Sequence record: KX397371.1
DNA length: 64,000 nt
Strand: one strand, 5' to 3'
Shown here in pieces: positions 25,535-61,826 of this stretch (positions are counted from its first letter, which is position 1; the number at the start of each line of letters is the position of its first letter). The notes under the pieces are model-generated. The model saw only the letters and a list, made by a program, of their open reading frames with translations, did no database searches and had not been told where the DNA came from. Both the position numbers and the translations under genes were made by a program.

Positions 25535-26158
25535 ATGAATCTATTACAGATGCGCGTTCGCACGGCACTGATATCTGCGACGGGGGTTCTGAACGCCATA
25601 CCGAAGCTGCCTAAAATAGTGCTCGGTGATGAAATCAGAAAGCGGCTTATTGTCAGTATGCTTGAAGAACAGACGTGGGCGAAGTACAGAACACTTCCTG
25701 CGGGTTATTCACAAGTAAGGCCACCGTATGTGGGTCAAACGCTAGACATGCTTAAAACGTTGTTTAAGGGCGCTAGCGTTGACGATGTACAACATGCGTA
25801 TCGGTGTCTGGCGAATGCGACAGACAAACTACTCGCTCGGAGCTATGGCTTATGGCCAGAAGGTTTACCCGAAGAGGGTTTCGATGACAGTTACCCTGCG
25901 GGTGCGCTGTTGTTTGACCACGGGGTGTCTTACCGATTCCACAAGAACTTCATCCATGCAGTTTGGCTACGTCCAACGGTAGACATGAAGGAAATGTCAG
26001 TTGCTTCCTACATCGACTTCATTTGCACACATTGCGGCGACGTCGACGTCAAGGGCTACACGGTGCGTGAACTAACACCATCGATGCCTATCGAAGATTT
26101 CCTCGGCGATGTGCACACCGATTATTTGGAGAGGAAATTATGCTCTACATCGAAGTGA
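25535..26158 (+). CDS. Hypothetical protein
   Basis: AGGGGG RBS before ATG 25535; overlaps the GNAT start. Confidence 0.75.
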   Translation: MNLLQMRVRTALISATGVLNAIPKLPKIVLGDEIRKRLIVSMLEEQTWAKYRTLPAGYSQVRPPYVGQTLDMLKTLFKGASVDDVQHAYRCLANATDKLLARSYGLWPEGLPEEGFDDSYPAGALLFDHGVSYRFHKNFIHAVWLRPTVDMKEMSVASYIDFICTHCGDVDVKGYTVRELTPSMPIEDFLGDVHTDYLERKLCSTSK

Positions 26159-26616
26159 GTCCTGATAAGGTCTCCGGTGACCTGTTCCCCGGATTGCGTA
26201 AATGGATTGATGACCAGAACGAACACCGAGGTCAACCCATCCGTGTGGTCATGGCAGTGGAAGATGATATTCCGATGGGTGTTATGGCCTATGCCGATGG
26301 CCAGATACTCTACATCTACGTACCGGAAGAATCTCGCCGGGGTGGTGTCGGTACGGCATTACTGAAACGGGCGGTGTTGGAAAGTAAGCGTTCGGTGGTC
26401 AGCGCAAAGGTGCACCCGTCGAACGTTGATGGATTATGTTTCATGCTCAAGTGCGGCTTCGCTATTGATGGTGTCATGATCGGTTTGGATAATGTACGTT
26501 ATCATCGTATGACGAATAACATCGTCGTTGTACATACGCCGCCGGAGGAGAAGCACTTAGAAACGTTTGTGACGAATGTGCCGATATTTTTATCGATGGC
26601 GGAAGGTAATTTCTAG
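26140..26616 (+). CDS. GNAT-family acetyltransferase
   Basis: YIYVPEESRRGGVGTALL (motif A) and N..GLCFMLKCGF (motif B). Confidence 0.85.
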   Translation: MLYIEVSPDKVSGDLFPGLRKWIDDQNEHRGQPIRVVMAVEDDIPMGVMAYADGQILYIYVPEESRRGGVGTALLKRAVLESKRSVVSAKVHPSNVDGLCFMLKCGFAIDGVMIGLDNVRYHRMTNNIVVVHTPPEEKHLETFVTNVPIFLSMAEGNF

Positions 26617-30032: not shown

Positions 30033-30509
30033 ATGAAAGTCGTTTTAGTTTCTAAGTTAACATCCCGGCTGGGCCAGAAGTTCCACGCCGAGTTAACCGA
30101 TTTGCACAACAGTCTCTATAACGACCAGCAGGCCCGTCTTAAAGACCTGAATGGCCGAAGTGGCTTTAATGAAATCGATGATGTCTCCGAAGTCTGGAGC
30201 GAAGGACAGCAGGCTGCCGTGGCTGTAGACGACGAAGGTCGTGCGGTGGGGTTCCTGTCCTTCTCCATTCAGACCGGTCGGTCGAACATGGGCAGTAAGT
30301 GGTTGTGGATTTACAACTTCTATGTCAACAACGACCAACGTGGTAAAGGTGTCGGTCTTCTGCTGATGAACGCGGTGCGTGACCACGGGAAAGCCAAAGG
30401 TTGTGGTTTCATGCAGCTCTACGTGCTGGACAATAACCAGCAAGCGATTGCGATGTACCAGAAGTTTGGTTTTCGCACCGAATATCGGGATATGGTGAAG
30501 GAGATTTAA
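30033..30509 (+). CDS. GNAT-family acetyltransferase
   Basis: NFYVNNDQRGKGVGLLLM and LYVLDNNQQAIAMYQKFGF. Confidence 0.9.
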   Translation: MKVVLVSKLTSRLGQKFHAELTDLHNSLYNDQQARLKDLNGRSGFNEIDDVSEVWSEGQQAAVAVDDEGRAVGFLSFSIQTGRSNMGSKWLWIYNFYVNNDQRGKGVGLLLMNAVRDHGKAKGCGFMQLYVLDNNQQAIAMYQKFGFRTEYRDMVKEI

Positions 30510-33682: not shown

Positions 33683-33762
33683 GAAAGACCCCTCTTACCT
33701 TCGGGTAAGAGGGTTTTATTTTTTACACCAACCAATAGTCCTATGCTTTATTCCACAAAATC

Positions 33763-34657: not shown

Positions 34658-34755
34658 AAGTAAAGTAAAGGGGGTCTTTCCCCCTTCTTATTTTTTGCCT
34701 TTTTACGCAACTTCCCTTTCCTGTGAATAACAAGAATTTGTTGCGGGGGAAATCG

Positions 34756-35763
34756 ATGCAATCGATAGCGCAATCAACCATCATTAAACCGTCGGTCGAA
34801 CCGACAGAACAGCAAATCAATATCACCATTGAGCGTCTCACTTGGGGTAGCGAAAAAGCACGCGAGTATTATCATGCCTTTGGGTCACGTACCATTCCGA
34901 TTAAACAGTTGAACGTTATCCTCAAAAATTCGCAGTACCAAGTCTTCGGTTTGCGTAACGACAGACATAAGCCACTCGGGTATATCTCGGTCATTACTAC
35001 CATGGGCGATGAAACACTCATCATTCACCATGCAGAAGAGATTATCTCTAAGTCTCTTAACAAAGTGGCGATGATGATGTTGTTGGATCACGTCGGGTGC
35101 CGCTATGCAATGACGGTTGACGGGTCGTCTGATAACTTCGACTTCCGCAATCGCATGGGCTTTAAGCTGATTGAAAACAACTGGATGGTGAACTGTAAAC
35201 CGTACGAGAAACTTCCCATCGATAAACGGATTGTGGATGTCTCTGGTTTAGAGTCACTCAGCGAACATCAGCTTGAGCAACTTACCGGTTTAGTCCGCTA
35301 CACCATCTACCGCGAAGGGCAGACTGATCCGTTTGGTCGGGAAATCTTCCGTGAAGTGTTACCAGAGTCGGTCATTGAACGTGGGCGCACCAGTCAGTAT
35401 AAAACGCTGGTCTGGATGGATGCGGGGGATATTCTCGGCGTCGCACAACTGCAATACGCACAATGGGGTGAGGTTATCCTGAGTGGGGTTGGGGTTGATG
35501 GTTCCCATACGGGCAAGCGTATCGGGCGCAATCTGGTTGCCGCGGCAATTCAGAAAGCGGGCATGTCTCACGAACACCTGATGGCCACCACCTTTGCAGA
35601 CAATGGGCCAATGAACCACCTGTTTGGAAACCTCTTAGGTTGGGATATGTTGCCGGGGTCAATTGGCGTGGAGTTGGTTGAGAACGCGGTGAGCTGGAAG
35701 AAGTCGAAGAAGTATCTGGGTGTGACAGCCGGTCACGGTGCCCCAATGTACAAAGGGGATTGA
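34756..35763 (+). CDS. Tandem (double) GNAT-fold acetyltransferase
   Basis: C-domain SGVGVDGSHTGKRIGRNLV and DNGPMNHLF..LGW; N-domain ends FRNRMGFKL. Confidence 0.75.
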   Translation: MQSIAQSTIIKPSVEPTEQQINITIERLTWGSEKAREYYHAFGSRTIPIKQLNVILKNSQYQVFGLRNDRHKPLGYISVITTMGDETLIIHHAEEIISKSLNKVAMMMLLDHVGCRYAMTVDGSSDNFDFRNRMGFKLIENNWMVNCKPYEKLPIDKRIVDVSGLESLSEHQLEQLTGLVRYTIYREGQTDPFGREIFREVLPESVIERGRTSQYKTLVWMDAGDILGVAQLQYAQWGEVILSGVGVDGSHTGKRIGRNLVAAAIQKAGMSHEHLMATTFADNGPMNHLFGNLLGWDMLPGSIGVELVENAVSWKKSKKYLGVTAGHGAPMYKGD

Positions 35764-35764
35764 G

Positions 35765-36586
35765 ATGCGTTCTATTTTAAAATGGGTCGGTGGAAAGAAG
35801 CGAATCATCCAACCCCTGCGTAAGGTGTTCGGTGACACCGATTGTTTCGTCGAGCCGTTCGTGGGCGCAGGTTCGGTATTCATGAACACCAACTTCCCGA
35901 AGTACATTCTCTCTGACTACAATCCCGATTTGGTTGCGGTGCTCCGTTCTGCGATGGAAGCCCCGGACGATTTGGTGGAAGCTTGTGAGCAACTCTGGAC
36001 TAACGGGTGTGACCCTGAGGTTTATGATGCCCGCCGGGCGATACTCAACGACCGTGAGAACGTCACCGTCGAAGACACCATTGACCGGGCAGCTATCTTC
36101 ATTTACCTGAACCGTCACGGGTACAATGGGTTGTGTCGCTACAACAAGTCGGGCGGGTACAACGTCCCTTATGGCGACCACCCAACCAAACCGTATTTAC
36201 CCAAAGAAGAAATTCATGCTTTCTGGAAACGCTGCACCGAATCCGAAGTAGACTTGCGCTGCTGTGGCTTTGAGGAGACGATTATCAATGCACCGAAAGG
36301 TTCACTGATTTACGCTGACCCTCCGTACATACCCAGCTCGAAGACTTCCTCGTTTGCGCAGTATCATAAAGCGTCCTTTAACCAACAACACCAACGCCAA
36401 TTGGCTAAACTCCTGAAAGAAGCACATCTTCGTGGTTGTCGTGTAGTCCTGTCGAATTCTGATACGCTGCTCACCAAAGACATCTACTATGGCTTCCAAT
36501 GGGAGACCGTAGAGGTGGGGCGGTATTTAGGGTCGAAGGCTGAAACCCGTGGACGTGTGAACGAGTTGATTGGTGTTCTGGAGTAA
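35765..36586 (+). CDS. dam: DNA adenine methyltransferase (Dam family, GATC presumed)
   Basis: LKWVGGK, FVEPFVGAGSVF, YLNRHGYNGLCRYN..G.YNVPYG, IYADPPY, SNSD. Confidence 0.92.
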   Translation: MRSILKWVGGKKRIIQPLRKVFGDTDCFVEPFVGAGSVFMNTNFPKYILSDYNPDLVAVLRSAMEAPDDLVEACEQLWTNGCDPEVYDARRAILNDRENVTVEDTIDRAAIFIYLNRHGYNGLCRYNKSGGYNVPYGDHPTKPYLPKEEIHAFWKRCTESEVDLRCCGFEETIINAPKGSLIYADPPYIPSSKTSSFAQYHKASFNQQHQRQLAKLLKEAHLRGCRVVLSNSDTLLTKDIYYGFQWETVEVGRYLGSKAETRGRVNELIGVLE

Positions 36587-36588
36587 CC

Positions 36589-37383
36589 ATGCACCTGTTA
36601 TCGTATCCACCTGTGTACGAGCGACCTGTCCTCCTTAACGGTCGAGAGGTTGAAGTTGAACGTATCTGGCAAGGCATTAAACAAACCCATCCGTTAGCGA
36701 TGGACGAGGAGCATTATCTGGTGGTGTCTAACACTCGCCAGACGCTCCTTGTATTAAGTGGCGAACGTCACGGCGATGTGTTCCATATTCTCAATATGGT
36801 GCCGATGACCGACAAGCCCTTTTACCAGTGGAAAAACCTCATGCGTCAACTCGAAGTGGTTCACTTCGATGTGGTATTAGACCCAAGTGCTCATGTCGAG
36901 CACGGGATATGTCAGGCCATGGGACTTGAGTTCGTGACAAAGCGTGTGAAGTTTACCCCGTTTGATGTTTCGCGTTTCAACACGCGTGCGCCGATGATTC
37001 ATCGTCAGGAGAACTGCTCTCTTGATGAGATGGAGCGTGTGTGTCAGATAACGAAGAAATCACTGCCGGGGTACAAGCACATCTTAAAGGAAGTGGCGTT
37101 CGGTTTTATGGAAACGTTGGTACGCAAACAAAACGACAAGATTACGTCGGTGTTGTTTGTTAGCCAGACACCTAATACCGTCACCGTCGCTAACTACGTT
37201 TCTGTGTTTCATCAACAGGACAGGCAGTATGCGCAGGACTTCTCGGAGTTCTTCCGATACTTACTGAAACTGTGCGGGACACAGAAAAAGTCGTTGTATA
37301 TCTCGCTGGACGCTAAGGCAGAGATACCGACTTACGATGGTATCACTCATGAGGTGGTGACACATCATTACACGATTGCTTAG
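36589..37383 (+). CDS. Hypothetical protein, probable degenerate tandem-GNAT fold
   Basis: ICQAMGLEF and ETLVRKQNDKITSVLFV align by eye with 34756; motif A not seen. Confidence 0.5.
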   Translation: MHLLSYPPVYERPVLLNGREVEVERIWQGIKQTHPLAMDEEHYLVVSNTRQTLLVLSGERHGDVFHILNMVPMTDKPFYQWKNLMRQLEVVHFDVVLDPSAHVEHGICQAMGLEFVTKRVKFTPFDVSRFNTRAPMIHRQENCSLDEMERVCQITKKSLPGYKHILKEVAFGFMETLVRKQNDKITSVLFVSQTPNTVTVANYVSVFHQQDRQYAQDFSEFFRYLLKLCGTQKKSLYISLDAKAEIPTYDGITHEVVTHHYTIA

Positions 37384-37390
37384 GAGGGTT

Positions 37391-38152
37391 ATGAGAGAGA
37401 TAACGAAAGAGGTGCTAGATGGTACGTATGACCAACCGCTCGGGCGTGGTGTATTAGACTGGCGTATCTTAGATCTGGCCCCCATGGAAACAAAACACAT
37501 TGTTGAAGTGGGGCGTTGGCGTGTGTACCTAAAACGTCATCGTATCGAGGAAACAGCGCTACTGGTTTCCGTTGACCGTTTTGGGGATGTGGAAGAACCA
37601 CTGAATCTGCTCCCTGATGTGCTGGATGTCAAGGCAGTCTTTGCTTACTCGACGACGACTGCGGATGAAGCCCTTAAACGAATAGGGTTTGATCTGCATG
37701 CAGTGAAATATATCATTCCACCGCGCGAGGGTATCAGACCACCGCCGAAGATGATTGAAAACTGCCTGTTGACGGACCAAGAAGCGGCGTCTTTTAAACT
37801 GGCCGCCATCGAAGAAGAAAGCATCCGTAAAGCGGCGGAAGCGTACGGTATGGGCACAGCTGCGTTTCACCGTGTCGACTTTGGGCACGGACGTACGGCA
37901 GTTGCGCTTATCAATATCGTCGATGAACATGCCACACTGCTGACGCACTGGGCAAGTGACTTCCAATCGCAAATGACGGTTGCTGACATCTTTAACTACA
38001 TTGCCTCCAGTCAGAAGAACGGCGGGGAATACGTGGTTAACCGTCAAACGTTCGATAACCCAACCCCTCTGGTGGAAACGCTGGAAACCCTCAACACCAC
38101 GACACGCGGTGTTTATATTATCACAAAAGGAGTATCTACCCATGCAAACTAG
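37391..38152 (+). CDS. Hypothetical protein, probable degenerate tandem-GNAT fold
   Basis: ALKRIGFDL and GRTAVALINIV segments parallel 34756/36589; GGAGG RBS. Confidence 0.45.
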   Translation: MREITKEVLDGTYDQPLGRGVLDWRILDLAPMETKHIVEVGRWRVYLKRHRIEETALLVSVDRFGDVEEPLNLLPDVLDVKAVFAYSTTTADEALKRIGFDLHAVKYIIPPREGIRPPPKMIENCLLTDQEAASFKLAAIEEESIRKAAEAYGMGTAAFHRVDFGHGRTAVALINIVDEHATLLTHWASDFQSQMTVADIFNYIASSQKNGGEYVVNRQTFDNPTPLVETLETLNTTTRGVYIITKGVSTHAN

Positions 38153-38438
38153 CATCAATCGTTCTGTCGCGCGTTCTAAAGAAGTGGTTTACGATGTGGT
38201 CTCTGGTGAAAAGACCCTGTTCCGTGCGGTGATTGTCGAGAACAACGAACTGCTCGTGGTCTATCCGGGTGGCGAGTTCTCTAAAGCGGAAAAGGTGGCA
38301 CTGGATAAACTCATCACCAAAGCGAAACACCGCGACGGGATTTCTATCCACCGTGTGGTTAATGGTCGTGAGTTAGTGGAGAATGGCAAAGACTTAGAAG
38401 TGCGTCCCGTGAGCACGCAAGTCAACGCCTTTGTATGA
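38142..38438 (+). CDS. Hypothetical protein
   Basis: AAGGAG RBS before ATG 38142. Confidence 0.75.
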   Translation: MQTSINRSVARSKEVVYDVVSGEKTLFRAVIVENNELLVVYPGGEFSKAEKVALDKLITKAKHRDGISIHRVVNGRELVENGKDLEVRPVSTQVNAFV

Positions 38439-38465
38439 CACCACTAACGTTATAGAGGAATCGCA

Positions 38466-38966
38466 ATGGATGTTATCGATTTCGAACAGCTTCCACAGCA
38501 CGACTTCGACCTCGGCGTCCGTGACATGGATTGCGGCTTCGAAGAAAAGGCGCGTGCGCTGTTCCAGAAATACGGCGAACTGATTATGGGTACCGACCAT
38601 CCAGACATCACACTGGATGAGTTCGAGAAACTGATCGTTGGTCTCATCACGACCCGCGCACAGGACAGAGCGTTGCTGAACGAGTTGAACTTTACCACCG
38701 TGTCCCCCGCGGATGCTGCCGGTATCCTGTCGCAGTCCATCGTGCCGAACGATGAGATTCTCGACAAGGTTGCTGAGCTACGTGGCCCGTTCGACACAGC
38801 GGTAGAAGACTACGCGCAGCAGTTAGCGGAATCGGAATACGCGATGGTCGCCCCTGAGGGTGAGCAGCTGCCGTCTGATGAGCAAACTGAAACTGCCCGT
38901 CTGCGTCTTGCGCGATATGTCATTACCAGCGTGCTGGTTGATGACCGTGAAGATTGTCAGCTCTAA
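38466..38966 (+). CDS. Highly acidic hypothetical protein
   Basis: About 35 D/E versus about 13 K/R by hand count; GAGG RBS; terminator at 38974-38993. Confidence 0.8.
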   Translation: MDVIDFEQLPQHDFDLGVRDMDCGFEEKARALFQKYGELIMGTDHPDITLDEFEKLIVGLITTRAQDRALLNELNFTTVSPADAAGILSQSIVPNDEILDKVAELRGPFDTAVEDYAQQLAESEYAMVAPEGEQLPSDEQTETARLRLARYVITSVLVDDREDCQL

Positions 38967-39064
38967 TGAAATGACCTCACCTTCGGGTGGGGTTTATTTT
39001 TTTTGCCTTTTTACAGAATAGCACCTATCTATGTCAAACCAAATAACCCTGAGGATTAAAAGCA

Positions 39065-55615: not shown

Positions 55616-55753
55616 TATTGTGTGGGACACCTCGGTGTCCCACTTTATTCTTTTTTTGTGCCAAACAAGATGGGCCTTTAATATGCTGGCAGGGGGTTAA
55701 CACTACCGCGGTAGTGTTTGGCCTTATTACACCTTAATAACCGAGTTAACGCG

Positions 55754-56548
55754 ATGTCTTTTAAATCCAAACAGAATCTGCTTAAACTCATCAACAAAGA
55801 GAACAAAATCTCCCCGGAGCTGACGTTCGATGATGTTGATATCTCTCTGCCGGAGGTGGTTTCAGTCGACGGTCGTGATTCAAAGGTTACGTTAACCTCG
55901 AAAATCAGGGGCGACGAAGGATCACAGGTTGAGGTGACATACCACCGTCGCGATCTACCTGACTATATTCTCGGCGATCTGAGGTTCGATACAATCGGTG
56001 TGGTCACGACCCACGATTATATTCCCGCGCTAAACGATCGTTTCGATTTGAACCTGCTTCCGGAAGACCTGGAAGACGCCCCGGTCGCGGGTGATTCGCA
56101 TACGGTAGTTGCCGTGCCGACATCACACGAATGGCGTGGGAGCGTTACATTACAACTTGTTACCGCAGTACCGTTAGCATCTGTTGTCCCTCTTACTGAA
56201 TTAGATGGACTGTTGTATCCTGATCATCAAACGACGTCGCTGGGGCAAGCCTCCGTGTACTCGTACTATTTGGATGCAAGTAAACTGGCTAGCTGGGTTC
56301 CTTCACTGCGCGCCGGTACAGCAGACATGACTGCCTTTGCGAAGGCGTTAAATACGATTGTACCTGAGCTGTGGGTAAATGAACTCAATGCGGTACCTTA
56401 CAACCTTTCACAAGCAGTAGTCCAGTTTTACGGCAGCCCGTCGAAGATTGCTGGTACGAACCCGGCGTTTGACAGTGTCCTCGGCTTAGAGTTGGGCCCA
56501 CTGTGTACGAACTTCCAGGGCACCTTACTGCTGCACTTTAACAACTAG
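55754..56548 (+). CDS. Tail-associated virion protein, paralogue 1
   Basis: LLKLINKEN...YHR...LN..FDL.L...D...GQA.VYSY...W...G.LLLHFN family pattern; start could be 55718. Confidence 0.7.
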   Translation: MSFKSKQNLLKLINKENKISPELTFDDVDISLPEVVSVDGRDSKVTLTSKIRGDEGSQVEVTYHRRDLPDYILGDLRFDTIGVVTTHDYIPALNDRFDLNLLPEDLEDAPVAGDSHTVVAVPTSHEWRGSVTLQLVTAVPLASVVPLTELDGLLYPDHQTTSLGQASVYSYYLDASKLASWVPSLRAGTADMTAFAKALNTIVPELWVNELNAVPYNLSQAVVQFYGSPSKIAGTNPAFDSVLGLELGPLCTNFQGTLLLHFNN

Positions 56549-56557
56549 GAGGGCTGA

Positions 56558-57400
56558 GTGTCTATCTACAAGAAACCCTCACGCGAGATGTTGTTAGATG
56601 CCATCAACCGCCAGAACAATCTGACGGCAAAACCCCTGACATGGAACCAAATCGCTTCGGGTTATCCTGAAGAGGTGTTGACTCCTGGGGCTGATCGCAA
56701 TACCCGTGTGCTGTTATACGGTCTGAACGGTCAGGGCTATAAAGGGAACGTCACGATTGAGTACGACCGTATTCTCATGTCGATTTTGTTCCGCAATGTG
56801 ATCCCAGTGGTGATTACCAATCCGGTCGATAAAGTTTCCCAACTGTTGCCTGCCATAAACGAGAAGTACGGCCTGTCACTGGTTGCCAGCGACATTGAAG
56901 ACTTCTCCGTGAAAGACATGGGTGAGAATTGGATTGCAGACGTCAACATTAAACCGGCCTGTCTGGCTTGGAAGGGTACGTTCAAACTGCGTTACGCGAA
57001 GTTCTTCCCGAACCTTGCCGATGCGGTCATGGACCAAGCCCTGTTGGCGATTATCCCACCGTTTACTGTCGCTGCGAAACCGCAAGCGGAATACGTGGCG
57101 TACGGATACGACTGGACGAACATGCTGCAACAGTTCGGAACTGATTGGGCGTACAACCGTGCGCTAACTGCTGATGATGTGGATTTGCTCAACGAGGTCG
57201 TGCCATTGAAATTTGGCTACGTCACCGGAGCCACTGCACAAACCGGGCAGATTGCGTTACAGGGTGCGCGCTTTATGGGAACGGCTGCCGTTACACCGGG
57301 TGACCAGTATGACGACTCGTTCCAGCGTGTGGCGGTTATCAAGCTAGCGGCAGACAGCAACTACGCGGGTAATCTCATCCTTCACTATCTGCCGATATAA
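56558..57400 (+). CDS. Tail-associated virion protein, paralogue 2
   Basis: LLDAINRQN, RNT, GYKG..EYDR, INEKYGL, GNLILHY. Confidence 0.7.
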   Translation: MSIYKKPSREMLLDAINRQNNLTAKPLTWNQIASGYPEEVLTPGADRNTRVLLYGLNGQGYKGNVTIEYDRILMSILFRNVIPVVITNPVDKVSQLLPAINEKYGLSLVASDIEDFSVKDMGENWIADVNIKPACLAWKGTFKLRYAKFFPNLADAVMDQALLAIIPPFTVAAKPQAEYVAYGYDWTNMLQQFGTDWAYNRALTADDVDLLNEVVPLKFGYVTGATAQTGQIALQGARFMGTAAVTPGDQYDDSFQRVAVIKLAADSNYAGNLILHYLPI

Positions 57401-57408
57401 GGATTCCC

Positions 57409-58254
57409 ATGCCACTTTTAGCTACCGCAGAAGAAGTTATTCTGAAAGCGTTGAATACCGAAAACAGTCTCGACCTTAAAGTCGCAGAGGTGGTCTTCGG
57501 TACACCGGCCATTCCTACAGAACCGGACGATGTCACCAAAGCCCAGGGCTTAAACAGCATGGTGCGTATCCAAGCATTGGCGACTGCTAATGCCATTGGA
57601 GCCACCACCGTGTACTACGACCGGGTCGACTTTGCCGACATGTTTACCGGCGTGGACGGTATCCAGCCGATGCGCATTCCCGCGCGTTTAGATGCTGTCT
57701 TTACCGCACACCAAATCGTGGGGTTGATTAACCAATACTACGGTTTGAGTCTACGGGCGAATGATATTGTTGATACGGACATCGACCGCAAAACCTGGAT
57801 GATGGATTTGATTGCAACACCAACCTCCTTAGGGTGGATTGGACAGCAGCAGATTCAGCTGTTACCAGGTGATGCCCTCCTGCCGATCAACTTTGAACCG
57901 GTGACGGTGATGCCGTACGAGTACCCGTACTTCAATACGAAGGTCGGGCAATCCGCAGTGTATTCGTATCCATGGCGTTTTGACAATTATGCAGCAGAGT
58001 TCCAGAACGCTGGGTTGTATATCACCCCTGAGCGTCTGGCGCAGATTCTGAAGACAGTCACCGGCGACGGGTGGATGGTGTACCGTAACCCGGTTAACTA
58101 CAACCTGAAAGAAGCCATCGTGGTGTATAACGGCCCGAACAAAGCATCGTTCCCGACCAACCCCTCGATTGACAATGTTCTGGTAGTCGAGCTGTCACTG
58201 TACAGTCTTAACCTTGGTGGACGTTTGTACCTCCACTACAACGATCCTGATTAA
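57409..58254 (+). CDS. Tail-associated virion protein, paralogue 3
   Basis: ALNTEN, VYYDR, INQYYGL, GQSAVYSY, GRLYLHYN. Confidence 0.7.
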   Translation: MPLLATAEEVILKALNTENSLDLKVAEVVFGTPAIPTEPDDVTKAQGLNSMVRIQALATANAIGATTVYYDRVDFADMFTGVDGIQPMRIPARLDAVFTAHQIVGLINQYYGLSLRANDIVDTDIDRKTWMMDLIATPTSLGWIGQQQIQLLPGDALLPINFEPVTVMPYEYPYFNTKVGQSAVYSYPWRFDNYAAEFQNAGLYITPERLAQILKTVTGDGWMVYRNPVNYNLKEAIVVYNGPNKASFPTNPSIDNVLVVELSLYSLNLGGRLYLHYNDPD

Positions 58255-58274
58255 TCCTGAGTAAGGGAAGTTAA

Positions 58275-59186
58275 ATGAAACCTTTAAACAAAACGTCTGA
58301 CCTGCTGGTTCTGGACTTCATCAACGAAAAGAACCCAGGTGCCGACCTCGAGTTGGGCAAAGTCAAACTGGGTACGCCGGTTCCGATTACCGAAGAAGAC
58401 GCCGACCGTAACACCTCGCTGGAACTGACCGCACGTAAGAACTCCGGTTACATCGGCAAACAAGGCGTTACCTACGACCGTTTGGAAGGTGTGTCGCTGT
58501 TCCGTAACGTCACTGCGTATCTGGACGTCAAGTTGCCGAAAACCACCACCGATCTGCTGCCAACCCTGAACGCGCAGTATGGCCTCAAAATCACCGAAGA
58601 CGATATCGTCCCGGCGGCGATTGCAGACAACACCAACCCACCGTTGACTGACCCGGAAGCGCCAGACCCGGCCCCGGTTGATCATGACATCGTCTTCAAA
58701 GACGACTGCTATGCGTACCTCGGTAAAATCGCGGTGAAAATTGGGCCACGTCCACAGGTGGGTGAGCGTTTGAGCTTGGTCGTTACCCAGACCAAACTTG
58801 ATGGCTTGGTGTACCCGGATGGTCCGTCTGATGATAAAGGTCAGGCGTACATCTACTCCTACGGCATCGACGCCTCGGCAATTGCACCGTTCTTGGATGT
58901 GCAGGCAACTGGCGTTATGGCCAACGATACCGCGTTTGCGGTTGAGCTGAACAAAGTGGTGCCTGAGCTGTGGGTTGCGGACGATGCTGTCCACGACTAC
59001 AACCTGAAAGGCGCGAACGTGCTGTACGTGGGTCTGACTGCGGATGACGGTACTGCAACCGGTACCGATCCGAAGAAACCGGTAGAAGGTGCGAACCTGT
59101 CCTACAACAAAGTGATGTTGCTGGAGCTGGACGACACCAAGTGCTCTAACTTCACCGGTATCATGTTCCTGCACTTCAATGCCTAA
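58275..59186 (+). CDS. Tail-associated virion protein, paralogue 4
   Basis: FINEKN, RNT, GYIG..TYDR, LNAQYGL, GQAYIYSY, GIMFLHFN; hairpin at 59195-59224. Confidence 0.7.
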   Translation: MKPLNKTSDLLVLDFINEKNPGADLELGKVKLGTPVPITEEDADRNTSLELTARKNSGYIGKQGVTYDRLEGVSLFRNVTAYLDVKLPKTTTDLLPTLNAQYGLKITEDDIVPAAIADNTNPPLTDPEAPDPAPVDHDIVFKDDCYAYLGKIAVKIGPRPQVGERLSLVVTQTKLDGLVYPDGPSDDKGQAYIYSYGIDASAIAPFLDVQATGVMANDTAFAVELNKVVPELWVADDAVHDYNLKGANVLYVGLTADDGTATGTDPKKPVEGANLSYNKVMLLELDDTKCSNFTGIMFLHFNA

Positions 59187-59257
59187 GTAGGTCTCGCTGG
59201 GAGGGGGAAATCCTCCTCCCGGCGTTCTCCTTTCTTTTTTAGGCCGAGGAGGCTAGC

Positions 59258-60097
59258 ATGGCTTTATACAGTCTGTCTCAGCGACAGTTCCTGTACGATG
59301 CGATTAACGCGGAGAACCCAGGGGCCATTGAGCCGATGGGACTGAACAACGCCGACATTGGCGTACCGAAAGCCATTCCCGCGACCCCCAGTGGAGCCAA
59401 CACCGAGATTACCGTTCGTGGGCGTCAAGGGCGTGGTTACGTGGGCGTACAGACCTTCCGTTACAAACGTCTGTCCCTGAATGATTTGTTCAAGAACATG
59501 ACGCCACAGGTGACTTCTCCGAATGCGTACGGGTGGCTCAACGTATTGTCGAAGAAGACCGCGTTTGTGCAAAACATCAACGGCCGTTATGGCATGAATT
59601 TGGTGCCGGACGATATCCCGGATGTGTACGTTTACCTGAACGTGAATAACACAGTGTCAGTGAAAGCGAGCTGTATTCAATATATCGGCTCCATTACCTT
59701 CCTGTCTATCCGGGGCAAGAACAACTTGGAAGAACTGGTGGTGAACGATATTCTGAACGAACTGTCACACCCAGTCCCGCCGAAAGACGGGAAGAAATCC
59801 ATGGCGCTGTTGACTTACGGTCAGGACTTTACTGACGAAGTCCAAGTCATGAACTCGTTTAAGAACGGGCGTCTGGATGTGGGCAGTAACTTTGATAGCG
59901 GCTACACCACCAACTTGATGGCAACCTTGGTTGCGCGCGGACTACCAAGCTTTGACCCGACCGGGGTAAATGTGACCCGTTCGAAGACCACAGCCGTGAC
60001 GGGTGCGAACACAGCGTACGATAACGTGCTGGTATTGAGTGATATTACCCTCGATGCCAACGTCGCTGGCAGCTGCATGCTTCACTACAACGATTAG
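59258..60097 (+). CDS. Tail-associated virion protein, paralogue 5
   Basis: AINAEN, GYVG..RYKR, INGRYGM, GSCMLHYN. Confidence 0.7.
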   Translation: MALYSLSQRQFLYDAINAENPGAIEPMGLNNADIGVPKAIPATPSGANTEITVRGRQGRGYVGVQTFRYKRLSLNDLFKNMTPQVTSPNAYGWLNVLSKKTAFVQNINGRYGMNLVPDDIPDVYVYLNVNNTVSVKASCIQYIGSITFLSIRGKNNLEELVVNDILNELSHPVPPKDGKKSMALLTYGQDFTDEVQVMNSFKNGRLDVGSNFDSGYTTNLMATLVARGLPSFDPTGVNVTRSKTTAVTGANTAYDNVLVLSDITLDANVAGSCMLHYND

Positions 60098-60107
60098 GAA
60101 ATAACTA

Positions 60108-60995
60108 ATGGCTATTTATCAACCTTCGAAAGACGTCCTGTTGGCGGCAGTGAACAGCCAGAACTCGCTGAGCGTTAAGATGACCGACATCGTGTGGTCT
60201 GCACCGAAGGACATCCGTGGGACCGACAAGGAAACCACCACCCAGCGTAACACGATGGTGAAAATCACCGCCGACGGTGTGGTAGGCTCTACTTGGTCGG
60301 GAAAGAAAAACCTGTACTACAACCGCATGAAAGTGCAAGACCTCGCCATCATCCTGGGTGATACCCTGGCGATTGGTCCGTCTAACTCGACACTGCATGC
60401 TGCTTTGGTGGGTCTGAATCAGCGCTACGGTTTTGCGCTGGAAAACACCGACTGGTTAGAAGCCGACATCGAATGGAACGGTGACAAAACCGCCGGTACC
60501 GTGAAAGTGACCGCTGACCCAGACTCCCTAGGCTGGATTGGCACCTACACCTTCAAAGTAGTGAAAGGTGACGAGTCCTTGGTGTCCTCTGTAACCACCA
60601 ACGTTCTGACCGGTCTCAAATACCCGAACGGGCAGATGGGTTCCGAAACCGTCAGTGCGATTATCGCTCCGGTGTACTCGTATCCGTACAACTTCACCAA
60701 GTACCGCGACACCCTGTTGGCATACACCCCAGGCGTCCTGTCTGGTCAGCCACTGACCGACATGGTCAATCTGCTGAAGGACATCACCGGGACGGCGTGG
60801 GTAGCAACCACTGCGGCTTCTTACGGTCTGGCGGGTGCAGAAGTGCTGAGCGTGGGTCTCAACGATCCAGTTGCAATGCCAACCAACGCGAAGTACAAGT
60901 ACGCCTTGGCCCTCAAACTGCCTGCGACCTGTACCACCATCGTCGGTACCCTGTACCTCCAGTTCAACGACCTGGACGACCCAAGCGAGGTATAA
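60108..60995 (+). CDS. Tail-associated virion protein, paralogue 6
   Basis: AVNSQN, RNT, YYNR, LNQRYGF, VYSYPY, GTLYLQFN. Confidence 0.7.
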   Translation: MAIYQPSKDVLLAAVNSQNSLSVKMTDIVWSAPKDIRGTDKETTTQRNTMVKITADGVVGSTWSGKKNLYYNRMKVQDLAIILGDTLAIGPSNSTLHAALVGLNQRYGFALENTDWLEADIEWNGDKTAGTVKVTADPDSLGWIGTYTFKVVKGDESLVSSVTTNVLTGLKYPNGQMGSETVSAIIAPVYSYPYNFTKYRDTLLAYTPGVLSGQPLTDMVNLLKDITGTAWVATTAASYGLAGAEVLSVGLNDPVAMPTNAKYKYALALKLPATCTTIVGTLYLQFNDLDDPSEV

Positions 60996-60998
60996 TGA

Positions 60999-61826
60999 AT
61001 GCTCAACTATGCTAAGCCGTCGAACGAACTGGTCTTTGACCTGATTAACCGCGACAACCCGAACCTGCCGTTTAAGGCCGATGCCTCCAACTGTATCGTT
61101 GAGAAAATCACGAACGTTGCCGTCAATGCCGCGTCGAATAACCGCAATACCTCAGCCCGTCTGCGCGGGGTGCAGGGTACCGGCTTCCGTGATGCGATTA
61201 CGGTGTACTACGACCGTGTGAACCTGGGACGTTTGTTACCTTGGGGCACCACGGTACAGGCACAGTTCGTCACCTTTGATGCACCCAACCTCCATGGGGC
61301 GTTTGCCGTGCTGCTCGATACCTACGGGGTGAACTTCTCCGCTATCGACATCACCAACTACGGCCTGAATGGGGTGAAGCAGGCGAACTATACATCTACC
61401 ACCACCATTAATGCCTTGGCGACATCCCCGGCGTACGTCGGGTCGGCCAACGTGCGTTACAGTCGTGGTCTGCCGGTACTGGATACCTCCATTACTAAAG
61501 AGGTACTGGTCGCGCTTCAGGAGCCGGTTGATCCGGCGCTGGGTCAGAAGTGTATTGACATGCTGACCTACGGTATTGACTTCACCGCGTACCGTAACCT
61601 GTTGACTGTCGATTCGTCTGGTCTGCCGCAATGGGCGGGTCTGCGTAAGGTGCTCGATGACCTCGGTGTGCCGAGCTATTCCGGTCCGTTGAACAGCAAC
61701 ACCGTGCAGGACGTGGCAACGTCAACGGCCCAATTCGCCAACAAAATCTATGACCGTGTGGTTATCCAAACGGGTATCGATGAAGCGGGTGTGAAGGGCG
61801 TGGCGTATTATCACTACAACAGCTAA
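60999..61826 (+). CDS. Tail-associated virion protein, paralogue 7
   Basis: LINRDN, RNT, VYYDRVNL, GVAYYHYN. Confidence 0.7.
   Translation: MLNYAKPSNELVFDLINRDNPNLPFKADASNCIVEKITNVAVNAASNNRNTSARLRGVQGTGFRDAITVYYDRVNLGRLLPWGTTVQAQFVTFDAPNLHGAFAVLLDTYGVNFSAIDITNYGLNGVKQANYTSTTTINALATSPAYVGSANVRYSRGLPVLDTSITKEVLVALQEPVDPALGQKCIDMLTYGIDFTAYRNLLTVDSSGLPQWAGLRKVLDDLGVPSYSGPLNSNTVQDVATSTAQFANKIYDRVVIQTGIDEAGVKGVAYYHYNS

Follow-up and report, generated by a model that had tools for sequence, protein, structure and literature searches.

Predicted tandem-GNAT-fold paralogues around an orphan Dam methyltransferase gene in the nucleus-forming jumbo phage Parshik

The genes considered here, gp117 to gp122 of Erwinia phage vB_EamM_Parshik, lie in a stretch of 64,000 nucleotides (nt) of sequence record KX397371.1, referred to below as the window, in which a position equals the record position minus 62,000. 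The 5 kb of the window around these genes are 100% identical to the Parshik record. Parshik belongs to the genus Machinavirus, now placed within the Chimalliviridae, the nucleus-forming jumbo phages; this is the family that the original prediction, made by a model from the sequence alone, had guessed. The GenBank labels are "putative GCN5-related N-acetyltransferase" (GNAT) for gp117, "putative DNA adenine methylase" for gp118, and "hypothetical" for gp119 to gp122. Our analysis concerns the fold and origin of gp119 and gp120 and their relationship to gp117 and to the Dam methyltransferase encoded between them. The genes are, with lengths in amino acids (aa) and isoelectric points (pI):

34756–35763, plus strand: gp117, 335 aa, predicted tandem-GNAT protein
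35765–36586, plus strand: gp118 (Dam), 273 aa, Dam-family orphan N6-adenine DNA methyltransferase
36589–37383, plus strand: gp119, 264 aa, predicted tandem-GNAT fold, N-lobe aa 1–128, C-lobe aa 129–264
37391–38152, plus strand: gp120, 253 aa, predicted tandem-GNAT fold, N-lobe aa 1–112, C-lobe aa 113–253
38142–38438, plus strand: gp121, 98 aa, basic protein, pI 9.05, phrog_7896
38466–38966, plus strand: gp122, 166 aa, very acidic protein, pI 4.09, final gene of the unit

The gaps are 1 nt between gp117 and Dam, 2 nt between Dam and gp119 and 7 nt between gp119 and gp120, followed by an 11-nt overlap of gp120 and gp121, and the gene coordinates and junctions of the original prediction agree with them.

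Sequence searches place neither gp119 nor gp120 in a known family. Pfam, NCBIfam, the PADLOC family models and the function labels of PHROGs yielded nothing for either protein, profile searches against the PDB were empty, and Pfam gave no matches supporting a family among all 37 members of the gp119 and gp120 families. Word-based homolog searches retrieved only two to three close relatives. When 1.84 billion representative proteins were searched exhaustively by profile, the gp119 family came to only 11 clusters at 50% identity, so there are no distant annotated relatives to lend a function, and the gp120 family is similarly narrow in its distribution.

The fold of both proteins was approached through AlphaFold2 models built from alignments of 18 (gp119) and 19 (gp120) natural homologs. 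The gp119 model has a predicted local distance difference test score (pLDDT) of 91.2 and a predicted template modelling score (pTM) of 0.82, with none of the five models below 90. For gp120 the corresponding values are 73.3 and 0.59, with one good model in five and the C-lobe at 80–90. Both halves of each model follow the GNAT order beta1-alpha1-alpha2-beta2-beta3-beta4-alpha3-beta5-alpha4-beta6, in gp120 at moderate confidence. When the models are compared with the PDB by Foldseek, both proteins match Legionella VipF (6wqb) over their full length (E = 8.7e-12 for gp119 and 7.4e-7 for gp120), and likewise the clavulanate-cluster protein CBG (2wpw) as well as 3iwg and 3frm; MAB_4324 (7q3a) and MshD (2c27) were found, among the matches listed, with gp119 only. 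There are 156 PDB matches to gp119 at E ≤ 1e-3, the best 50 of which are all GNAT-fold, and the full-length alignments of gp119 and gp120 to the tandem GNATs VipF, CBG and MAB_4324 extend over 250–280 columns. The models support a two-lobed GNAT fold for each of the two proteins. The original prediction had proposed GNAT folds here, to be abandoned if the proteins modelled otherwise, and the proposal stands because both model as two-lobed GNATs whose best full-length matches are tandem GNATs. A weak match of gp120 (aa 146–185) to the helix-turn-helix (HTH) of the MqsA antitoxin was rejected, as in the model this stretch is alpha2-beta2 of the C-lobe.

Comparison of whole-protein profiles by hhalign aligns the gp117 family with the gp119 family over 200 colinear columns (probability 54%, E = 1.3e-4); the signal comes from the whole-protein profiles only, lobe-by-lobe comparisons all remaining below 6% probability. 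The alignment pairs FRNRMGF of gp117 with ICQAMGL of gp119, and the acetyl-CoA (CoA, coenzyme A) binding motif A of gp117 faces a glycine-free loop of gp119. The helix-G(F/L) segments that had been noticed in all three proteins are indeed present, at aa 130–138 of gp117, aa 107–115 of gp119 and aa 94–102 of gp120, and they are among the best-conserved N-lobe positions: no residue but G99 is invariant throughout the gp120 family, and G112 is nearly so in the gp119 family. In BFVD, the best non-orthologous match of the gp119 model is the gp117 homolog of phage Kwan (E = 4.6e-14, 274 columns), followed by a GNAT of phage Derbicus (E = 1e-12) and by the phiEaH2 protein encoded in the gp120 position (E = 7.5e-9). 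These results show gp117 and gp119 to be diverged paralogues. The gene that follows gp119 exists in two types, A and B, which have a common N-lobe (E = 1.5e-4); Parshik carries type A, SPN3US and the Erskineviruses carry type B, and Caitlin carries both.

Further phage proteins resemble members of the trio. Other BFVD matches of the gp119 model (E between 1e-7 and 1e-3) are an Asesino protein of 190 aa and, in Kwan, Huxley and other phages, uncharacterised proteins about 214 aa long, so the GNAT-fold expansion may exceed three genes; Pfam searches of candidate open reading frames (ORFs) for the Parshik counterpart were uninformative. Five proteins of 158–262 aa from SPFM phages and an E. coli assembly (P0078 and P0084–P0087) give partial matches to the gp120-family profile, and P0078 matches the gp119-family profile as well; they probably result from alternative gene calls or from calls fused over the junction.

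The copy with a recognisable acetyl-CoA loop is gp117. Pfam detects a GNAT domain in its C-terminal half only (aa 195–295, PF00583, 34.7 bits against a cut-off of 20.7). Motif A, the loop between beta4 and alpha3 that binds the pyrophosphate of acetyl-CoA, has the form R/Q-x-x-G-x-G/A. In gp117 this loop occupies aa 251–264 (nt 35506–35547) of the C-lobe, where matches returned by PDB profile searches support the motif. Positions G257, R258, L260 and A263 are invariant in the gp117 family, and the first glycine is an arginine in Machinavirus (Parshik included) and Wellingtonvirus and a glycine in Seoulvirus. The "full" motif A of the original prediction therefore holds for the second glycine and for the invariant arginine, leucine and alanine, and fails at the first glycine. 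The colinear alignment with the gp119 profile, together with the match of the gp119 model to the Kwan homolog, suggests that gp117 is itself two-lobed, with a C-lobe at about aa 159–335 and an N-lobe at about aa 24–158 that has no CoA signature and would also have GNAT topology. Judged from its sequence, gp117 is a probable acetyltransferase. In the record of phage SEGD1 (KU726251.1), the gp117 homolog matches in two pieces at about 95.4–96.3 kb, where no gene is annotated, which suggests one break in the record, either through a frameshift or through faulty sequencing.

In gp119 and gp120, all four beta4-alpha3 loops are devoid of a conserved glycine, and in the C-lobe loop of gp119 the commonest residue at a position is found in at most 7 of 18 sequences. 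Motif A, reported missing from both proteins at the outset, is thus absent from both lobes of each. In characterised tandem GNATs catalysis takes place in the C-lobe alone (PMC10936415). This rule is obeyed by gp117, and gp119 and gp120 have no signature in either lobe. Between Parshik and pEa_SNUABM_6 the ratios of nonsynonymous to synonymous substitution rates (dN/dS) are 0.059 for gp117, 0.078 for Dam, 0.075 for gp119, 0.067 for gp120, 0.17 for gp121 and 0.064 for gp122, values that are approximate because dS is near saturation for some of the genes. All six genes are under purifying selection and are not decaying. From these properties gp119 and gp120 are most probably non-catalytic binders, which could serve as partners, as substrate presenters, or as decoys or sequestering proteins for related ligands.

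It is conceivable, if rather unlikely, that gp119 and gp120 are active transferases after all, with a non-canonical site for acetyl-CoA or with a different donor of acyl or aminoacyl groups. The Fem and aminoacyl-phosphatidylglycerol synthase (aaPGS) families are GNAT-fold enzymes that use other donors, and Foldseek also returns aaPGS/MprF domains (5vrv and 4v34, E ~2e-7), while N-myristoyltransferases and a FemAB protein are found among the matches to viral models. Moreover, the dN/dS ratios of the two genes are as low as those of gp117 and Dam, and the last strands of each lobe contain conserved polar residues (R119 and H260 are near-invariant, and E201 is present in 15 of 18 sequences). However, the top structural matches are tandem GNATs of the CoA type and not Fem or aaPGS proteins, no lobe has a conserved donor-binding loop, and no family model of an enzyme class matches either protein.

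The methyltransferase gp118 is a member of the Dam family. It matches the D12-class methylase family of Pfam (PF02086, 1e-51) and TIGR00571 (236 bits against a cut-off of 115), falls below the equivalog cut-off of E. coli Dam (238 against 441 bits), has the S-adenosylmethionine (SAM) motif FVGAG (aa 32–36) and the catalytic motif DPPY (aa 185–188), and is 35–43% identical to Dam genes of enterobacterial phages. Its family membership points to GATC as the likely target. Among PADLOC models the best for gp118 is 'orphan MTase' (methyltransferase); gp117 and gp119 to gp122 have no match, and PADLOC found neither a defence-system model nor a nuclease partner.

A comparison of related phages separates the history of Dam from that of the GNAT genes. 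A Dam gene lies directly upstream of the gp119 homolog, with an overlap or a gap of at most 12 nt, in 14 of the 14 genomes or contigs that carry one, down to ~19% identity; the 14 are Parshik, SPN3US, Caitlin, phiEaH2, Kwan, Asesino, pEa_SNUABM_29, pEa_SNUABM_11, SPAsTU and five metagenomic contigs. Dam is kept in the Erskineviruses phiEaH2 and Asesino though gp117 is missing there, and in one metagenomic contig (L011) though gp120 is missing; Caitlin has an extra GNAT copy near Dam. At the corresponding locus of the Derbicusviruses Derbicus and Phobos, three tightly spaced genes whose products, at 278–323 aa, have the size of tandem GNATs (gp102, gp103 and gp104) directly follow the thymidylate kinase gene and precede gp105. 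Derbicus gp102 and gp103 match the gp117 family at probabilities of 99% and 98.6% and have a Pfam GNAT domain in the C-lobe, and gp104, with no Pfam match, matches gp102 at a probability of 54%. Profile searches identify Derbicus gp105 (E = 1.6e-20), Phobos gp105 and a 75-aa gene of L011 as homologs of gp121, and a gp121 homolog follows the GNAT array in every relative, Derbicus and Phobos included. No Dam gene is present at the Derbicus or Phobos locus, and the complete Derbicus genome has no annotated methyltransferase, the best tblastn match to Dam having an E-value of 0.14 over 21 residues. Because the Derbicusvirus locus has the array and gp121 without Dam, these constitute an older conserved unit, and Dam is specific to the clade of Seoulvirus, Machinavirus, Wellingtonvirus and Erskinevirus, where it sits inside the array. 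The linkage of Dam to the array is therefore strict in the SPN3US-like clade and is not conserved at the wider level that includes Derbicusvirus; a linkage not kept in relatives was one of the outcomes that the original prediction had named as refuting it.

The original prediction had proposed that the GNAT-fold proteins and Dam could form one complex for DNA or protein modification or for anti-defence. On such a view gp119 might, for instance, have no catalysis of its own and be the subunit through which the action of Dam on adenine is targeted, regulated or extended. We regard both the general proposal and this example as improbable. In every case Dam and gp119 are close neighbours; they share one transcription unit (described below), and both are under strong purifying selection. 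As the case of Mom shows, adenine N6 in DNA is among the targets open to GNAT-fold enzymes (PMC7824862). The adjacency, however, weighs little, because the whole region is collinear in the clade. The orthologous array exists in Derbicus with no Dam in the entire genome, and Dam persists without gp117 in Erskinevirus and without gp120 in L011, so that Dam as an integral part of a GNAT-Dam-GNAT-GNAT module is not supported; furthermore, the similarity of gp119 to Mom is marginal (BFVD rank 49, E = 8e-3) and the neighbouring genes match no defence-system model. What credit the proposal retains it owes to the Dam-gp119 adjacency being invariant wherever Dam exists. A stricter version, in which gp119 (perhaps with gp117 and gp120) is an obligate partner of Dam that makes or regulates an adenine modification, or steers Dam between the phage nucleus and the DNA of the host, appears to us still less probable; if correct, it would add a novel type of module for modifying DNA or regulating its modification to those of nucleus-forming phages. 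The idea that gp119 and gp120 are unrelated alpha/beta proteins forced into one fold by AlphaFold2, and the operon a chance string of genes, draws on the nearly blank sequence methods (Pfam, PDB profiles and lobe-level hhalign) and on the moderate confidence of the gp120 model, and is very unlikely given that all five gp119 models reach a pLDDT of at least 90, that the two proteins independently recover the same tandem-GNAT structures over their full length, that the gp117 and gp119 whole-protein profiles are colinear, and that the Derbicus paralogues bridge the families.

We consider it reasonably probable that the locus is a composite, in which an orphan Dam gene was inserted later into an ancient trio of tandem-GNAT genes, one encoding a probable enzyme and two encoding probably non-catalytic proteins. 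Our confidence is high for the fold, for the paralogy and for the Dam-free array, and lower for the "non-catalytic" nature of gp119 and gp120 and for the functional independence of Dam and the trio. In this scenario, a tandem-GNAT gene would have been locally duplicated to a trio before the SPN3US-like clade split off, and an orphan Dam gene, probably GATC-specific, would later have been inserted between the first and second copies. Dam would now be co-transcribed with the trio and not mechanistically tied to it. With the pyrophosphate loop kept in its C-lobe, gp117 probably acetylates an amine on an acceptor in the cleft between the lobes, as characterised tandem GNATs do; the acceptor could be a host protein, a phage protein or a small molecule. 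The other two copies would have lost the loop in both lobes and retained the scaffold for binding rather than transfer.

Several points weigh against this interpretation. The gp120 model is only of moderate confidence, with one good model in five, and the putative two-lobed architecture of gp117 and of the Derbicus proteins comes from profiles and from matches to the gp119 model. The loss of the glycine loop is no proof of lost cofactor binding or catalysis. The adjacency of Dam and gp119 in 14 of 14 cases is also what a functional pairing predicts, and because all 14 genomes are globally collinear it proves neither reading. The direction of the event, a gain of Dam in one clade as opposed to a loss in Derbicusvirus, rests on parsimony with few lineages. 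Finally, our literature searches on SPN3US, on Asesino and on the core genome of the Chimalliviridae met with no mention of these genes and with no data on the expression, binding or activity of their products.

In the window, GATC is the most depleted of the 256 tetranucleotides, with 95 sites compared to 234 ± 14 in shuffled sequences (observed/expected ratio 0.30), even though Parshik encodes a Dam of its own. The depletion is common to all relatives sampled, with ratios of 0.21 genome-wide in Derbicus and 0.07 at the Phobos locus, and it is independent of a phage-encoded Dam because Derbicus, which has no Dam, shows it too. GATC avoidance is known in enterobacterial phages (for example PMC5014478).

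The extent of the transcription unit was assessed from features other than gene spacing. Tight junctions are common in this part of the genome, with 20 of 38 junctions within the surrounding annotated 23 kb being at most 11 nt long or overlapping, and for this reason the spacing is not beyond chance and was dropped as evidence of coupling. The following features delimit the unit or resemble those that do:

33690–33713, plus strand: strong terminator, followed by a similar T-run plus TTTTTAC (to 33727)
34668–34686, plus strand: strong intrinsic terminator, G+C-rich stem of 7–8 pairs and then a T run, ending the upstream HTH/gp116 unit
34691–34706, plus strand: promoter-like 16-mer TTTTTTGCCTTTTTAC, ~50 nt upstream of gp117
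38973–38994, plus strand: strong intrinsic terminator, 9-pair stem and then a T run, closing the unit
38999–39014, plus strand: second copy of the 16-mer TTTTTTGCCTTTTTAC, heading the next unit (gp123)

The 16-mer has two exact copies, each a few bases 3' of one of the two intrinsic terminators (34668–34686 and 38973–38994), and six sites when two mismatches are allowed, compared with 0.68 expected. Seven phages keep a hairpin and an invariant TTTTTAC upstream of their gp117 homologs. By itself TTTTTAC shows no enrichment (11 sites, with 10.2 expected), and consequently only the 16-mer and its placement after terminators carry weight. Where a jumbo phage has RNA polymerases of its own, its early promoters are short AT-rich motifs specific to that phage (PMC7598289). 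The 16-mer is accordingly a candidate promoter for a phage RNA polymerase, and in each of the three cassettes of terminator, T-run and TTTTTAC a terminator seems to be joined directly to a promoter for this enzyme. The unit, bounded by terminators, comprises the six genes gp117 to gp122 from about 34706 to 38994; as the terminators and the repeated 16-mer set its limits, gp122 belongs to it. The operon of the genes from 34756 to 38142, which had been deduced from close spacing, thus is one unit, although the spacing by itself is insufficient evidence and the unit runs on to gp122.

Of the last two genes of the unit, gp121 has no Pfam match and gp122 no family match. The acidity of gp122 (36 Asp and Glu residues versus 13 Lys and Arg) prompts the mere thought of a role like that of a DNA mimic. 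The SPN3US-like clade has a gp122 homolog at this place too, whereas the Derbicus homolog is 8 kb removed from the array.

No characterised system corresponds to the locus, as the original prediction had supposed; PADLOC recognises nothing beyond an orphan methylase, and the structural resemblance to Mom is marginal. Characterised tandem GNATs (VipF 6wqb/7wx5, MshD 2c27, CBG 2wpw, MAB_4324 7q3a and GlmA 5kf1) likewise have two lobes per chain of ~260–340 aa and provide the best full-length structural matches of gp119 and gp120, yet the sequence identity is only 7–14%. Moreover, they have at least one working lobe, whereas gp119 and gp120 are predicted to be loop-less in both, and in Parshik three such genes stand in a row in a phage. 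The Derbicusvirus array gp102-gp103-gp104 of Derbicus and Phobos is the orthologous locus, located after thymidylate kinase and before the gp121 homolog; two of its three copies have a Pfam-detectable GNAT C-lobe, as opposed to one of three in Parshik, and it has no Dam. With orphan Dam enzymes (the class of E. coli Dam, phage P1 Dmt and T4 Dam), gp118 shares FxGxG, DPPY and the lack of a nuclease partner, and it differs from them in being carried by a GATC-depleted nucleus-forming jumbo phage and embedded in a GNAT array. Single-domain phage GNATs for which a modification of host proteins has been proposed, such as Rac of phiKMV-like phages and the jumbo-phage GNATs in the survey of Iyer et al. 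2021 (PMC7824862), are likewise phage-encoded and have a probable role in host takeover, in contrast to which gp117, gp119 and gp120 are two-lobed and paralogous, two of them lacking the cofactor loop. The same survey of jumbo phages mentions GNATs and Dam separately and does not describe an array of the Parshik type. Mom of phage Mu was considered because this GNAT-fold protein modifies the N6 of adenine, the atom that is also methylated by Dam. Mom has a single domain compared to two in gp119, the template modelling (TM) score of the match is 0.24, and the comparison gave no indication of DNA binding by gp119. A DNA acyl-modification of the Mom type is not supported, there being no specific similarity beyond the generic GNAT fold.

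These results provide two conserved "hypothetical" families with a predicted fold and an evolutionary origin. Both families belong to SPN3US-like jumbo phages, which serve as genetic models and are candidates for biocontrol, and the trio of GNAT paralogues with two lobes each is of older date and conserved within part of the Chimalliviridae. The presence of adjacent copies, some of them loop-less, suggests that the GNAT scaffold is used for binding or regulation in host takeover. Separating the array from Dam removes an attractive but probably false "module". If Dam and gp119 were partners after all, they would represent a new control of DNA methylation among phages whose DNA is concealed by a nucleus-like shell.

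The SPN3US-type homologs of gp119 and gp120 have 145 and 236 cluster members, respectively, many of them from assemblies of Salmonella enterica and E. coli isolates, in contigs of ~240 kb. These jumbo phages thus frequently enter the assemblies of surveillance isolates, perhaps because of a carrier state or of contamination.

Two single-domain GNAT genes, gp102 (26140–26616) and gp109 (30033–30509), are located at most 9 kb upstream of the Parshik array, and together with the two-lobed trio they bring the number of GNAT-fold genes to five in a stretch of 12 kb. Their Derbicus counterparts, gp85 and gp97, occupy matching relative positions. Further along the window, seven consecutive plus-strand ORFs of 275–303 aa (55718–61826) resemble the head-protein paralogue family of SPN3US, a large family described in PMC5105663 and annotated in Derbicus as virion structural proteins.

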